A DNA stretch of 64,000 bases from positions 1,178,001 through 1,242,000 of the forward strand of contig CM075993.1 of assembly GCA_038087875.1 (NCBI GenBank), in the 5' to 3' direction. Shown piece by piece: positions 13,301 to 62,575 of the stretch. How positions within the stretch are numbered: position 1 is the stretch's first letter; every line of letters begins with the position of its first letter. The DNA is from Malacoraja senta (Eukaryota). The notes beneath the pieces are model-generated. The model was not told the origin of the DNA. It made no database searches and was given only the letters and a program-made list of their open reading frames with translations. A program made the translations under genes and the position numbers.

Positions 13301-16300
13301 AAACGGATATGAGCTGCTGGAAGAGCTGGTACGTTTCACTCATCAGCAAGCCTGTACGTTTCCATCTTTGGTAACTGAGTTGAAAGGAGGGAAGCTGTTT
13401 GCCAACTCAAAAATAACAGTGTGTTCATCATCCGTGTGTTCATCATCCGTGTGTGAATCATTTGTGTGTGAATCATCCGTGTGTGAATCATTTGTGTGTG
13501 AATCATTTGCAGCTTTACTGCCACAACTTACACTGTTCCACTGACTGGCTACAGATTCAAATCAGCACCCAGTTAGTGGTGTAGAAATGGGATGCCCGTC
13601 AGAGGTAAAGAAAGGAGGGGGGGTAGAGAAACAAGAGTACTGAGCTACAAATACTTCCACCAGTGGGAGAATCTAGGACCAGAGGTCATAGCCTCAGAAT
13701 TAAAGGACATTCCTTTAGGAAGATGAGGATGAATTTCTTTAGTCAGAGGGTGGTGGAAATTATTGTCACAGAACGCTGTGGAGGCCAAGTCAATAGATAC
13801 TTTTAAGGACGAGATGGAATCTTGATTGGTACGGGTGACAGGGGCTATGGGGAGATGGCAGGAAAATTGGGTTGAGAGGTACAGCAGGCAGGTACAGCAG
13901 GCAGTGAAGAAAGCTAATGGCATGTTGGCCTTCATAACAAGAGGAGTTGAGTATAGGAGCAAAGAGATCCTTCTGCAGTTGTACAGGGCCCTGGTGTGAG
14001 CACACCTGGAGTATTGTGTGCAGTTTTGGTATCCAAATTTGAGGAAGGACATTCTTGCTATTGAGGGAGTGCAGCATTGGTGTACGAGGTTAAATCCCGG
14101 TATGGCGGGACTGTCACATGTTGAAAGAATAGAGCAGCTTGGCATGTATACACTGGAATTTAGAAGGATGAGAGGGAATCTTATTGAAACATATAAGATT
14201 AGTAAGGGATTGGACACACTAGCGGCAGGAAACATGTTCCTGATGTTGGGGGAGTCCAGACCGCGGGACTGGGCTAGTCGAACCTCCTGCGACTTTGGAG
14301 TTTCCCGACATCAGTCTCTACCCGAGACTGCGAGCTCCTCGATGTTGAAATCCGCAGGCCACGGTTTGAGCGTCGATTCCAGGCAAGGGATCGCAGGCTC
14401 CGATGGTAAGTCCACGGCCCCGCGGTGGGGCTCAAAGTCAGTCTCTAGCAAGGCCTCCAGCTCCATGATGTTAGGCCGCAGAGCGACCGGAGATACGATC
14501 CGGAAAACAACCCGATTTCCGGCAAGGTAAGAGATTGAGGAAAAAGTTTCCTCTGACCCCCTCTCCCACATAAAACAAACCAGAGAACATTAACACATAC
14601 TTTTAAAACACACTGAAAATAACAAAAAAGACGAAAAGACAGACAGACTGTTGGTGAGGCTGCCATCGCTGACAGTGCCACCCAGTGGAATATGTGGATG
14701 ATCAGCCATGATCATAGTGAATGGCGGTGCTGGCTTGAAGGGCCGAATTGGCTACTCCTGCACCTATTGTCTATTGAATGACCTAATTCTGCTCCAATCA
14801 TTTATGAAATTCAGAAGACTCATCTGATACTTTAACGATTTCTCACAACAGTCATTTTAGCAAATCAAAACTCTCTGTGCACAAACATAATTTACAATGT
14901 CATTGTGATCATCATGCATAGGCCAAGATAAACAGCACACATCAGTAACATCAGTACACATTCTCACCTTTGGCAAAACTGGTTTGGCTTTTGTGTTCTT
15001 ACTCCTCCTAGTAAAAGAACAAAAGGGGTTGCAATCAGCACACAACGATTTGCTACTGTGGTCAGACATCATCAGTGATATTAAAACAACCATCACACTG
15101 GGTTTCTTCACACTTGTTAGGATGGTCATAATAAAACTATTTGGACCAAACACATCTGAATATATTGACATCAGAAAGATTTCCCGAGTTTGAGGGGTAA
15201 AACAGGTGAATGCACAAACTGCACTATGGCCAATGGAAGTTCTTACATAGTTAGTATCAATCCCTTTTGGATTAATGTCCAAAATTGTTTTGTTTACATA
15301 AATAATACATTCACAAGAAATGTTAGCAACTTGAATGCAGTGTTTTTCTCAGGATAAGGGAATCAAGAACTAGAGGCCAGAGGATTAAGGTGGGTGAGAG
15401 GGAAAGGATTTAACAACAACCTGAGGGATATTTTCACACAGAGGGTGGTGGATATATGGAACAAGCTTAGAGTAAGTAGTTGAGGCAGGTACAATAATAA
15501 CATATAAAATACATTGGACAGGTACATGGATGGGAAAGGTTTGGAGGGATATAGGCCAAACACAGGCAAATGGGATGAGCTTAGATGGGACATCTTGGTC
15601 AGTATAGATGAGTTGGACTGGACACTGGAGGACCCATTTCTGTGCTGTACAACTCTATGACTCTACATTTGGATTTAGTCACCTCATGTACATGCTTCAA
15701 GGATTCCCCATTTTTCATCATTGGGGCATCATTTAGTTTCTGACTTAGACATGCAATGACTTCCACACATCTCCTCAGAAATATGATACACGGAAGGCAT
15801 AGCAAAGAGAGGCCCTGTATGATTTCTTGATAGTCTCACAACCAAAAAAGTAATAATGCATACTGACAATGTGGAGGAGCCCTGCCAAATGGAGTCTGAA
15901 TCCATGATGTAATGCATCAGATCTACAGTAATACAGCCTTCCTGAAAACCTCAGGCTATTGCTAATATTTGACTATTGCTAAATCTATCTCTCCAACGTT
16001 ACTTTCCATTTCCCATTCCTGAAGGCTGCAACTTTTGCTTTCCTACATTTCCACAGGCATTGATCTCCACCATGTGGATACTATTTATGAGACCTTGTTT
16101 TGTATTGGCAAGGTTTTCAGTTATAAAACGCAGAACATCACGCACTTTCTAACTGCTTAGAAGCAGGATGCGTTTTTTTTCTCCCTGTCTCCTTGATCTG
16201 GAGATATCAAATTGCAGTATGTCACAGCAATTCTTGATTAAATTAAAAATAGCAAGCATTTATTTGATGCAGCAGTCAAGTCATACAAAAAGACATTTCA

Positions 16301-19300: not shown

Positions 19301-22300
19301 AAAGATGGAAACAAATAGATTAACGCAATGCTGTTGTGTAGGAAGGAACTGCAGATGCTGGTTTACATCGAAGATAGATACAAAATGCTGGAGTAACTCA
19401 GCAGGACAGGCAGCATCTCTGGATAGAAGGAATGGGTGACGTTTTGGGTCGAGACCCTTATTCAGACTGAGAGTCAGGGGAGAGGGAGGCACAGAGATAA
19501 GAAAGGGTTTGTGAAAACGAGACATCAAAGGGGACGAAGTTCAAGGAAAATGAAGAATAGATCATTGTTAGCTAGGAGAAGGTGACAACGAAGCATACAG
19601 AGATAAATGTTAATCAAGGGGACACAGATGGGTCAGAGAACTAGAAAGGGGGAGGAATGGAGAGAGAGGGAAAGCCTGGGTTACTTGAAGTTAGAGAAGT
19701 CAATATTCATACCGGTGGGTGCAAGGTGCCCAAGCAAAATATGAGGTGCTGTTCCTCCAATTTGCGCTGGGCCTCACTCTGACAGTGGAAGGGGCCTAGG
19801 GCAGAAAGGTCAGTGTGGGAATGGGAGGAGGAGTTAAAGTGTTTAGCAACCAGGAGATCAGGTAGGTTTAGGCAGATTGAGTGTCTTCCTCTCCCGACTC
19901 AATCTGAAGAAGGGTCTCGACCAGAAACGTCACCCATTCCTTCTATCCAGATATATACTGAGTTACTCCAGCATTTTGTGTCTAACACAATGCTCTTGAT
20001 TTGTGACTTGTTATGGAAGGTGCAAATTATTTGCTCATTATTCTTTTGTCAATAGCTTTATTAGGCAACATGAGGCAGATTAACACTTCAATTATAGGAA
20101 GCTAGATTTTACAGTACCTGCATCCAAAGTAACAAAATATTTTGTGTAAAAATGTTTTTAAGACAGCCTCTCTTGGCTGGGATGTCACCAATTACCCAAT
20201 AGCCTGTTAATGCTCAAGGTTTAATACCCCACAAGTATGATGATGTCAAAACACAATTTCCAAATTTGCAGATGACATAAAACTTGGCAGCACTGAGAAC
20301 TGTGAGGATAGAGATACCAACAGACAAACATATGGCAGAGGAAATATAATGCGGAGAAATGAGGTAATGCAGTTTGAGAGGAAGAATAGAGAAAAAATGG
20401 TCTCCTCCTGTGCCGTAAGTGTTCTACGATTCTATGAACTCACGGTTCAGCACAAGTCACTGTGTTTTGGGTAGTGTGGCAACGGGGATATACCGTGGTA
20501 CAGAATAAGCCATTATTTTCTTAAAAGAATTGATGGGAATAAATGAATATTCTCTTTAGAGCAGCAGACTATAGGAGGGCTAACAAGTAAGGCAACCAGA
20601 GATTCCCAGGCCTGAACCAAATCTCAGGTCTGACTTTGGCTCACAGTCAAAGCTCAACTTGAGCCAATTAAAAGAGGGAAGTGTGAGAAAAATGATGCTC
20701 AACACACAAATAGCCAATAAATAGTGTCACATTTTTAAATTCAAACAATTCTAATGAATATTGATTTTGGGGCTTAAACTTCAATCTAATACACAAACTC
20801 ACTGCTTTGAACTATGCTCTCCTCTCATTTCATTCATCTTTTCCAGACTATCTATGGTTAATAAGCATTTACCATCACCTCATAATCACTCGATCGTCAC
20901 TCTATAGGCATTCCCTTTGCTCCATCCACCCTTGCTGCTTCTCTGCAAGTTCAACCAGCTGCAATTTCTAACTTATCTCCTCTGGTGAAAGGACATCAAT
21001 GCAACATCTGAGATATTTTTCACTCCAAAGATACTGCCTGACTCACTAAATATTTGTCGCATTCTCTACGTTTATTAACATCCTAGATTTTAGTGAGAAA
21101 GCATTAATTTTCCCCTGAAGAGTTTGGTAAGACAGTAGTACTTGCAAGTTCCTAAGTTCATGAAATGGCCACACATTTGTAACGCGCCTCATGATCTTGC
21201 TTCATGATTTTTAATGAGTGCCAGTCAGAGAAAATATGCTAAACCCTTTCCTTTTCAAGAATTCCTGCTGTGATATATACTTTATGAAGAATATCAAAGT
21301 AAAATGGAATCACTCCCACCATATGTCATAGAAACTGAAAAATAATTCGCTTGCCAAGGCACAGTTCAAATCTAATGAATAAATCAGTCACATATTTGCT
21401 AAGTATCTCTCAGAATATTTTGAAATATGTTTAGAAGAATGAACAGTATTATCGTGAACTTCATATTCACAGATATTATTACACAAAATAAACACAAGTA
21501 TTGCCAAACTCATAATCCACTCTCAGTTTGTGTAACAAACATAGCTCATAACTTTTAAAAAATAACAAGCCTCATAAAAGGAAATCCCTAAACTTTATTA
21601 CGAGCTGCAATCCAAATCAGCATTTTTTTCCAAGACTCTTAACAGATGCAATGCACATTTCCAGCATTTCCTGCTTTTATCATCTAGCATTAATAGAATT
21701 CAGATGTGTACACAATGTACAGTGTACAAATAGTGAAAGGTTTGGATAGAGTGGATGTGGAGAGGATGTTTCCATTAGTGGGAGAGTCTAGGACCAGAAG
21801 TTGTAGCCTCAGAATTAAAGGATTGTGGCGGCAGCCTATACACGGGCCACTTATGCTCGAACCCTCGTCAGGAAGTACGAGGGCGGGCACGTGACGTCAT
21901 GGGCTAGAGGGAGTGTCCTGGTACTTAAGGTCATCTCACCTCGAGACCACCAGGTGTTCAACTGAGGGAACAACCTCGCTCAGCTACAGCAACACTGTTA
22001 ATCACGTCGGGGTCACCAATGTAGTGCGTGGGTCTCAGAATGAAGCACGAAGTCGTGTTTTGAAAGGCACTTTTTTATTATGTTCCTCCCAGTTCTAGGG
22101 CAGACCAAACGAGACATTGGTGACCCCCGACGCTCCATTGGCGTCATGATGGAGAGAAGACAAAGCCCTACCTCCTCACAGGCTGGCCCGGCCCTGTCTC
22201 TGGACGCGGTCTCCGTAAAACTGCCCAACTTCTGGACCACCCGGCCGCTCATCTGGTTCCAGCAGGCGGAGGCCCAGTTCAACCTGCGGGGCATCACGGT

Positions 22301-25300
22301 CGATGCCACCCGCTTCTATTACCTGGTGGGAGCCCTCGACCAGGATGCGGTTGAAGAGGTCACGGACTTCCTCGCAGACCCCCCGAACGATGATAAATAC
22401 CTCGGCCTGAAAGAGCTCCTGCTCCAGATTTACGGACTGAGTAGGATGGAGCGGGCAAGTAGGATCCTGCATATGGGGGGCCTGGGCGACCGACGGCCAT
22501 CTACCCTCCTAAAGGAGATGGTGGCGCTACTAGACGGGCACACGCCATGCCTGTTGTTCGAGTACACCTACCTGCATCTGCTGCCGGTCTACATTCGGTT
22601 GCAACTCACCGACGTCTCGTTTGGTCTTCCCTAGAACTGGGAGGAACATAATAAAAAGTGCCTCTCAAAACACAACTTCGTGCTTCATTCTGAGACCCAC
22701 GCACTACAGGATGTTCCTTTAGGAAGGAGATGAGGAGGAATGTCTTTAGTCAGAGGGTGGTGAATCTGTGAAATTCTTTGCCACAGAAGGCCATGGAGGA
22801 CTAGTCAATGGATATTTTTAAGGCAGAGATAGATAGATTCTTGATTAGTACGGGTGTCAATGGTTATGGGAAGAAGGCAGGAGAATGGGGTTAAGAGGGA
22901 GATATAGATCAGCCATGATTGAATGGTGGCGTACACTTGATGGGCCGAATAGCATAATTCTGCTCCTATCACTTATGAACTTATGACCGCCGCATACATG
23001 AAACACTATTGTAGTTTTTAATTCAATTCTGATTCAGGCAGAGCATAAACAAACACCAAGCTCTTTTTATTTGACTCCTTAATACAGAATTCCTGTTGCC
23101 TAACCCACTTCTTAAAGCATAAATACTTCTCATTTCAAATATCATTTTATTTTTCACTTAGTTATGAATTTTGAATTCACCAAGATGAAGAACATTCATG
23201 TGTAGGAAGGAACTGCAGATGCTGGTTTAAACCGAAGATAGATACAAAATGCCGGAGTAACTCAGCAGGACAGGCAGCTTGTTTAGGGAGAAGGAATGGG
23301 TGACGTTTCGGGTTGAGACCCTTCGTCAGACTGAAAGTCACGGGAGAGGGAAACGAAAGATTTAGACGATGATGTGGAGACACAGCAAAAATTGGGAGCA
23401 GCGAGAGAGGGTATATCTCTCAACATCATCATCCATATCTCTCGTTTCTTTTTCCCGTGACTTTCAGTCTGAAGAACAGTCTCGACCCGAAATGTCACCC
23501 ATTCCTTCGCTCCACTGTTTTGTTAAATTTTATCTCTCATATTCAGTGATGGAAATTCATAGTAATTTGCGTCTGCAAAACTTGGATTTAAAAGATGACA
23601 AATAACTTCAATTTATTAGCATCAAAATCACCATCGTTGACTTAAGTAAATGAAGAAATCTATTCCTACCGTGAGGGTTTGTCGTTGATGGTATTTGCTC
23701 CCTGCAAATTAGACAACGGTGTCCTGGGGCTTTTTCTTGTAATACCTAATACAAAAACAAGTGCTAAAATGGTAATTAATCAGATGGAGATGAACAGCAG
23801 CAAAATGAAGCATGCATCCGTTACAGCATGCTGCAGGCATATGAGCAGTGACAACCTGAATATTCCTTGACAGCAGATACAATGCAGAAACAGGTACAAT
23901 ACACACAAGATACGTCTGAGGAACGGGGAATAGTTGCAACAAGCACTTACTTCATAAACAAAGCAAAAAGAAAGCTGGTAAATTATATTCTGGTCTTAAG
24001 TTCTGCTCCTTTATACTCCATAACAATGCAAGATTTTAATTTTAAGAAAAGGTAAAATCACAGCCAAGATTTTCAGTGCCTAACCCTTAGAAAGCACAGG
24101 ATTGAGGCACGGAAGTAAACATGTATCACGTACAAAATAAAACAATGGTCAATGAGGTTACAAGACCAGAAGCAAAGACAATAGCAAAAATGTTTAGGAA
24201 GGATCACGGGACCACCATTGAAGAGTTGCTCCAATGGAAGCAAGGATTCCAGTATATAGCAGGAAGTGTTTTTAATCACATTCTCTGCCCAATTCGTCTC
24301 AAATTAAATTTGCGTGTCCTCTAAGTCCCATGAGATAGATGAGTATAATAGCTCTGAAGTGGTTGTCAGAGGAAAGCATGTTGCACATGTAAATGACCAA
24401 GCCCAAAGCAACTTGGAGAACAAAGAAAACTCATTATACTTGACCAAAAATTATGGTGATCATTTTAACAAAGTGCTTTAATATACACATGTTACTTGAT
24501 GTCTTGAACTTGGGTGTTAGAAGAAAAAATGGTTCTGATGTCCATTAAGCAGCAAGGCATACACAAAGGGCCTACCTTGCTTTCAGCCTCACTTGCATTC
24601 AAATTCATGACTTCTGGACAAACTTTTAAGAAACAAGTTTTAATTTAGTGGTAGAAAAATTCAATGAGGGTCAATCCCTCCCCATGGATGAATACATAGC
24701 CACCTATTATCAACATGATAATGAATATAATTCATCCCTTCCCACTGGTAAAGGAAAGAATATCACTACTCTCTGAAAAAATCCTCTGATCCTAAAGTAG
24801 TGGAATTCACTCAGCTGACAAATGGAAAAAAATTAACTTTCAAATTCTCTAGATTTTTCTTTTACAAATTTTGTTTCTTGGCATTAATTAGAAAAAATAC
24901 TTCCTGCATAAAAAACATCCCATATAAAAACACAAGATGACTTATTAGCACAAGCATTAATGAGATTGTTGGTTAAAAGCTCACAAAGTAATGTGGTTCC
25001 CTCACTTCACCTTTTGCATGAATCCCACATTGTTTTTAAGTTTAGGACAGATTAATCTTTAGTCAAAACACTACATTTGTATAAATGATTCCCTACTGCT
25101 CTAATTTATTATTTGTGGAGATTAATCATTTGAACTTTCAGTGAAACTTATCCCAAAGCAAAATTTCTAGACCTGAACCCACCAGTAAGGAAGGTGGCAT
25201 TGTATTTTCAAGCTCAACCTTCTAAAATACACAAACATCTGATCACCTTAGTCAACAAATAAACTATACAAGGAAAGATGTCTGACAGTAAAAGTGCTAG

Positions 25301-62375: not shown

Positions 62376-62575
62376 NNNNNNNNNNNNNNNNNNNNNNNNN
62401 NNNNNNNNNNNNNNNNNNNNNNNNNNNNNNNNNNNNNNNNNNNNNNNNNNNNNNNNNNNNNNNNNNNNNNNNNNNNNNNNNNNNNNNNNNNNNNNNNNNN
62501 NNNNNNNNNNNNNNNNNNNNNNNNNNNNNNNNNNNNNNNNNNNNNNNNNNNNNNNNNNNNNNNNNNNNNNNNNNN
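62376..62575. other. Assembly gap (200 N)
   Basis: Run of N. Confidence 0.99.

Follow-up and report, generated by a model that had tools for sequence, protein, structure and literature searches.

How does an integrated retrotransposon come to carry, upstream of its own primer binding site, a copy of its primer transfer RNA (tRNA) joined to an inverted piece of its long terminal repeat (LTR)? This question is raised by an 885-bp insert at positions 21824-22708 of a 64,000-nucleotide stretch of the Malacoraja senta genome (assembly GCA_038087875.1, contig CM075993.1, positions 1,178,001 to 1,242,000 of the forward strand), referred to here as the window. On balance, our analysis favors the view that a skate Ty3/gypsy element, from a clade that combines a DUF7041 gag with a tRNA-Trp primer, left here a copy that was dead on arrival, its DNA having been made through at least three non-canonical template switches during reverse transcription and then integrated in the normal way. 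The preliminary description of this locus had proposed an integrated product of aberrant reverse transcription, and this core idea holds in light of the insert's anatomy, the normal design of its clade and the tRNA-derived character of the inverted copy.

Anatomy of the insert and its target site

Read from left to right, the insert is composed of the 5' part of an LTR, a sense-strand copy of 18 nt of tRNA-Trp, an inverted 96-nt R-U5 segment, the element's own tRNA-Trp primer site, a gag fragment and a direct R-U5 segment. The LTR part (177 nt, 21824-22000, plus strand) begins with TGTGGCGG, holds CACGTGACGTCA at 21888-21899 and comprises U3, perhaps with the start of R. It is followed by a plus-strand copy of tRNA-Trp positions 59-76, which are the 3' 18 nt including the CCA (22001-22018), and by a single A (22019, plus strand) that is the complement of the T spacer between U5 and primer site in the clade, where relatives mostly read ..CTACA-T-TGGTGACC. 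The inverted R-U5, or left arm, occupies 22020-22115 on the minus strand, and at its inner end the junction at 22116-22123 carries native U5-end, spacer and primer-site letters (..ACA-T-TGGTGA). The element's own primer site (22118-22136, plus strand) has 14 letters matching the tRNA plus one extra C (22118-22132, TGGTGACCCCCGACG), followed by CTCC. An open gag fragment of 162 codons (22146-22634, plus strand) is cut off after ..LQLTDVSF and ends in a GLP-stop that is read from the LTR. The direct R-U5, or right arm (22614-22708, plus strand), ends in ..CACTACA and contains AATAAA at 22650-22655, an assignment drawn from the LTR ends and poly(A) signals of relatives.

Its 885 bp contain neither a polypurine tract nor a 3' U3, pol is absent, and no G-rich tract precedes 22614. 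In place of two direct complete LTRs there is a U3 on the left only, a direct R-U5 on the right only and a second R-U5 in inverted orientation. A BLASTN comparison within the 64-kb window found no second copy of any part of the insert, and scans of the window returned no tRNA gene and no Rfam match. The 21824-22000 stretch is multi-copy in four related organisms; one contig carries a further copy that starts exactly at 21824 next to a different flank, and a contig of organism E is colinear with the window over 21865-21992.

The outer boundaries confirm an integrase-type insertion with a 4-bp duplication, as had been claimed from the TG..CA tips and the flanking GGAT. Direct reading of the window places GGAT on either side of the block (21820-21823 and 22709-22712), the left copy lying within a very high-copy host repeat. 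In many contigs of the four related organisms, flank-to-flank joints skip exactly 889 nt, which equals the 885-bp insert plus one GGAT. Consistent with these joints, another copy of the host repeat in the same window (13640-13790) runs through the insertion point without interruption and with a single GGAC. The host repeat itself (21688-21823 and 22709-22900, and again at 13640-13880) reaches summed contig depths of 10^5 to 10^6 in the four related organisms and is among the most abundant repeats of their genomes. The unique flank is matched at 96-98% by contigs of three organisms.

Clade membership and normal design

The open reading frame at 22146-22634 matches the Pfam family DUF7041 with an E value of 6e-20, and a search with the gag recovered 6749 relatives at E up to 0.001. 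From these, 80 relative loci were fetched from metagenome contigs, with gag 37-58% identical, and the primer site was counted on 75 of them. In longer relatives, such as P0108 with DUF7041 followed by RVT_1 and then rve, reverse transcriptase precedes integrase in the Ty3/gypsy order; the window copy itself has no pol. In 62 of the 75 relatives, the sequence leading into gag consists of ..CTACA, a single T and a tRNA-Trp primer site, and this site is usually matched to the tRNA over 13-14 nt before CTC, with all 18 nt matched in one locus only. The LTRs of relatives span ~137-240 bp. They open with TGTGGCG or TGTAGCG immediately downstream of a G-rich polypurine tract and close with ..CTACA, and their poly(A) signal lies 30-55 nt ahead of that end. 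One relative (L019) is likewise flanked by a 4-bp duplication (ACCT).

Membership of the insert in this Ty3/gypsy clade is supported by its gag domain, by its primer site with the T spacer and by its tips with a short duplication. Compared with the relatives, the left tip (TGTGGCGG) and the right tip (..CACTACA) are the proper U3 and U5 tips of the clade, with the right arm in its normal orientation. The preliminary description depended on 21824-22000 being part of the LTR, and its left tip fits the TGTGGCG/TGTAGCG starts of the LTRs of the gag-bearing clade. The insert's own primer site, ..GACGCTCC, likewise represents the normal state for the clade. An imperfect primer site had been reported, and this is correct to the extent of one extra C relative to the tRNA, a letter that comparison of contigs and reads found missing from many other copies; the CTC that follows the 14 matched letters is the usual clade sequence. 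An inverted tRNA copy was found in 0 of the 80 relatives, and an exact scan of metagenome contigs for the 20-mer spanning U5, the T and the primer site gave no match. A DIRS-like reading was also considered and is ruled out by the 4-bp duplication, the integrase-type TG..CA tips and the internal position of the left arm.

The best protein matches come from the skates Leucoraja erinacea and Amblyraja radiata. In the latter, the first exon of gene model P0019 derives from the same gag family at 87-92% identity. This model is annotated as a probable deoxycytidylate (dCMP) deaminase, its first ~80 residues being gag of this retrotransposon family fused to dCMP deaminase; the likely cause is a chimeric annotation or exonisation of an element. 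Two metagenome relatives, L016 (at ~4255) and L030 (at ~4475), have a 3' LTR directly followed by a T and the tRNA-Trp primer site, an arrangement expected where tandem copies share an LTR or where the assembly of a contig ran around a circle. In run X15, a 132-nt contig identical to gag 22348-22479 has a depth of 165, compared with 0-2 for the unique flank, reflecting either numerous identical copies or an RNA run in which the family is expressed.

Routes to the inverted primer-linked segment

The 18 nt at 22001-22018 are an exact copy of tRNA-Trp positions 59-76, judged against a human tRNA-Trp antisense oligonucleotide (bioRxiv 10.1101/400127), and in antisense the same 18-mer is the classical primer-site primer of avian retroviruses (PMC5029493). 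It is unique in the window, where 0.04 chance matches would be expected even at up to three mismatches. The exact match that had been reported stands, while its length is amended to 18 or 19 nt since the A at 22000 also equals A58 of the tRNA. The match ends at 22001, or at 22000 when A58 is counted, with no read-through past position 59 into the T arm. In HIV-1 (human immunodeficiency virus type 1), a stop of reverse transcriptase at m1A58 after 18 nt of primer tRNA is documented (PMC12657518), as the preliminary description had stated, and the skate copy ends where m1A58 halts the enzyme. A single A connects the 18-mer to the reverse-complemented U5 end, and together they have the sequence of a primer-linked minus-strand DNA. 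From a comparison of the letters, the perfect inverted copy must derive from the tRNA itself and not from a primer site of the clade's type, because the native site matches only ~14 nt before CTC. The earlier proposal that the inverted site is perfect, and the element's own site not, owing to its tRNA origin is supported by these clade sites.

The inner joint between gag and R is informed by the same-family gag in P0019, which reads ..TDVSF, then ADIR, and continues ..TDVSFADIRALGRCADALW, whereas the gag of the window breaks off after ..TDVSF; distant relatives agree with P0019. The preliminary description had asked whether native gag holds the junction letters, and both ..TDVSF and the 10 nt GTCTCGTTTG do belong to native gag. 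These letters (22614-22623, plus strand; codons V-S-F plus G) are native gag, because the gag of P0019 continues through them, and by comparison of the arms they are also the first 10 nt of both. Either R starts there and strong-stop DNA landed in gag by microhomology, or the R-U5 retained here begins at 22624, so that each arm includes letters of gag. The proposed landing of strong-stop DNA in gag at a microhomology is supported insofar as the 10 nt are native to gag, and R may start at GTCTCG. The deletion junction is located within 22614-22624, and R-U5 in relatives is ~85-95 nt long, judged from the positions of the TATA and poly(A) signals.

The two R-U5 arms differ by three substitutions and one indel in a T run (22020-22115 against 22614-22708), in agreement with the divergence of about 4 in 96 given initially. 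A common starting base had been stated for the two arms, but the inverted repeat does not stop at the same base in both. It extends 8 nt beyond the arm, to 22123/22606, with 22116-22123 matching the reverse complement of gag 22606-22613 at six of eight positions (chance ~0.004). Of the last 10 nt of the proposed minus strand, 8 would pair with ACGTCGGTGA, right at the joint of gag and R; this is the single best site in the 585-nt strand, where the next best site pairs at 6 of 10. The inverted repeat has its inner boundary where the strand is complementary to its own 3' end, which is consistent with snap-back but not proof of it. Folded as single-stranded DNA, the minus strand forms a ~100-bp stem with the 18-nt tRNA copy as a free 3' tail (z -19). 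Extension from the ACGTCGGTGA pairing site gives the observed letters without any later mutation. Later CpG decay of a perfect copy could also account for the mismatches in the 8-nt extension but would need two hits in one arm that recreate ACA-T-TGG, and we prefer imperfect pairing at birth.

The anatomy, the normal design of the clade, the native gag reading and the pairing site are observed, and from them we infer the order of events, the choice between intra- and intermolecular priming and the source of U3. The tRNA-Trp primer would have initiated minus-strand DNA through U5-R, and this strand would have continued inside gag instead of at the 3' R, with loss of pol, the polypurine tract and U3. 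Extension would then have carried it across gag and the primer site to a point 3 nt inside U5, at the end of the RNA template. At the gag/R joint, ACGTCGGTGA could next have offered the minus strand a pairing site for its own 3' end (..TCACCAATGT); copying would then have run back along the strand's 5' part, through R-U5 and into the still-attached tRNA, and halted at m1A58 after 18 nt, leaving the inverted arm and a perfect inverted primer-site copy. A plus strand begun at the polypurine tract of a co-packaged genome may have supplied U3 in a third, end-to-end switch at 22000/22001, after which integrase would have used the normal U3 and U5 tips to generate the 4-bp duplication. We favor intramolecular snap-back over a two-molecule scheme because the 6/8 extension sits at the best pairing site of the minus strand's 3' end, and under snap-back the second packaged RNA stays free to make the plus strand that supplies U3.

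Several observations weigh against this sequence of events. The U3/tRNA joint at 22000/22001 has at most 1 nt of microhomology; a strand at the m1A58 stop may have continued on a plus-sense U3 template, or a nascent plus strand may have jumped to the free tail. A protein search with the 61-codon frame that crosses this joint gave no match in a database that holds almost nothing of the family. Among the matches listed, no read or contig runs across the inner junctions of the insert. Any placing of the U3/R border and of the first base of R is provisional. Finally, the arms differ at 4 of 96 positions though the insert looks young. Its CpG observed/expected ratio is 0.76 compared with 0.3 in the flanks, and only ~2 private changes are listed over 468 nt of gag; the arm difference at 22674 is a private CpG change. 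This divergence in excess of age mildly suggests two templates, with arms that were not identical at birth.

Arm divergence above the apparent age of the copy is also what would be expected under the scheme first proposed for this locus, which remains the strongest competitor, if an unlikely one. There, R begins with GTCTCG, a complete strong-stop DNA jumps into gag at the 10-nt microhomology, and the minus strand, once it has reached the primer site, uses its final 2 nt to anneal at the 3' end of another strong-stop DNA that is free and linked to tRNA, both being extended. These boundaries would entail a canonical LTR in which ..CACTGTTA is directly followed by GTCTCGTTTGGTCTT, with GTCTCGTTTG preceding GTCTTCCCTAG. 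On this scheme the inverted piece would correspond exactly to a single complete strong-stop DNA with 18 nt of its primer and would end at natural stops on both sides; the 10 nt are present in native gag, a start of R near 22614 is reasonable given the ~85-95 nt of R-U5 in relatives, and HIV-1 proviruses have junctions at the 5' end of R (PMC12657518). The scheme nevertheless depends on gag and the start of R sharing 10 identical nt, which has a chance of ~0.004 in a 4-kb element, and leaves the 6/8 match beyond the arm, of similarly low chance, unexplained; it is this 8-nt extension that points to self-priming of the minus strand in place of copying from a second tRNA-linked strong-stop DNA. 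It would also spend both packaged RNAs, so that no minus strand with U3 and a polypurine tract is left to supply U3.

It is improbable that the inverted R-U5 is instead the normal design of a non-autonomous family with many copies and a transcript bearing a ~100-bp double-stranded RNA stem. All parts of the insert are multi-copy in the four related organisms and the gag frame is open, as such a family would have it. However, the insert has no polypurine tract and no 3' U3, and the 5' end of its transcript would find no matching R at the 3' end, making a normal first-strand transfer impossible; we disfavor this reading because the normal route does not allow such a structure to be copied. In addition, the depth of related-organism contigs drops over 22084-22127, which is what breakage of most copies at the junction would produce, and the design occurs in none of the 80 relatives. 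These indirect points favor an accident. A more speculative extension, to which we give little credence, is that skates harbor a recurrent and perhaps propagating class of gypsy minus strands without a polypurine tract that are completed by fold-back priming, the integrated copies acting as hairpin loci in which R-U5 would form a ~100-bp stem of double-stranded RNA, a possible source of small RNAs that silence the family.

Rearrangement of a normal deleted copy after integration, through a replication-based inverted duplication or a nested insertion, is very unlikely. Template switching during replication is known to generate inverted duplications that show short microhomology. Here, the inverted primer-site copy matches the tRNA at 18 of 18 positions, so it is no copy of the element's own site, ..GACGCTCC, with its extra C, and the outer tips and duplication are intact. 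The preliminary description had named a target duplication around the inverted segment as the mark of a nested insertion; the flanks of that segment proved to be inverted and it has no direct repeat of its own, which rules nesting out. An assembly artefact built from a chimeric or fold-back read is the least credible account, as the arms differ at four positions, with a private CpG change in one, and a tRNA 18-mer with a clean 4-bp duplication is unlike the products of read artefacts, despite the lack of a junction-spanning contig among the matches listed.

Related systems and neighboring sequence

Parts of the favored reverse-transcription route have counterparts in other systems. In defective HIV-1 proviruses produced by aberrant first-strand transfer, completed strong-stop DNA is transferred to internal sites (Hardy et al. 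2025, PMC12657518). As in the skate insert, internal sequence is joined straight to the R-U5 of the 3' LTR with loss of the intervening part including U3, and the junction can fall at the 5' end of R after complete strong-stop synthesis. The skate insert differs in its additional inverted R-U5 with 18 nt of the primer, and as a germline fossil of a fish retrotransposon in place of a somatic provirus. Self-priming in vitro (PMC6088434) similarly involves a minus-strand 3' end that folds back on the same strand and is extended to a plus-sense copy of R-U5 that is joined to the minus strand; that known reaction uses the cTAR hairpin inside R and yields dead-end products not seen in virions, whereas the skate fold-back would have followed extension through ~490 nt of gag and the primer site, and its product was completed and integrated. 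Insertions from tRNA read-through during delayed second-strand transfer in HIV-1 (PMC12657518) provide a third parallel, in that DNA copied from the primer tRNA becomes fixed in an integrated element. Those copies extend 7-54 nt past the primer site in normal orientation, while the skate tRNA copy halts at 18 nt (19 with 22000), is inverted and lies upstream of the element's own primer site. In the literature we came across no integrated element described as retaining, between U3 and its own primer site, an inverted strong-stop copy with the primer sequence attached.

Understood as a product of such template switching, the skate insert is a frozen record of reverse transcription failing before integration, a rare event but not an unprecedented one, and the position of each template switch can be read from it. 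What is known of reverse-transcription errors comes mostly from reactions in the test tube and from the HIV proviruses of patients, and a germline copy holding the inverted, primer-linked first DNA product would show that, in an ancient lineage of vertebrates, dead-end intermediates can be rescued in vivo and go on to integrate. A single locus is an anecdote.

Two further features of the window lie outside the insert. A run of 200 N at 62376-62575 marks an assembly gap. At 23290-23508, ~600 bp downstream of the insert, a second inverted repeat with 91-nt arms that are 86% complementary around a 37-nt spacer looks like a hairpin-forming repeat.

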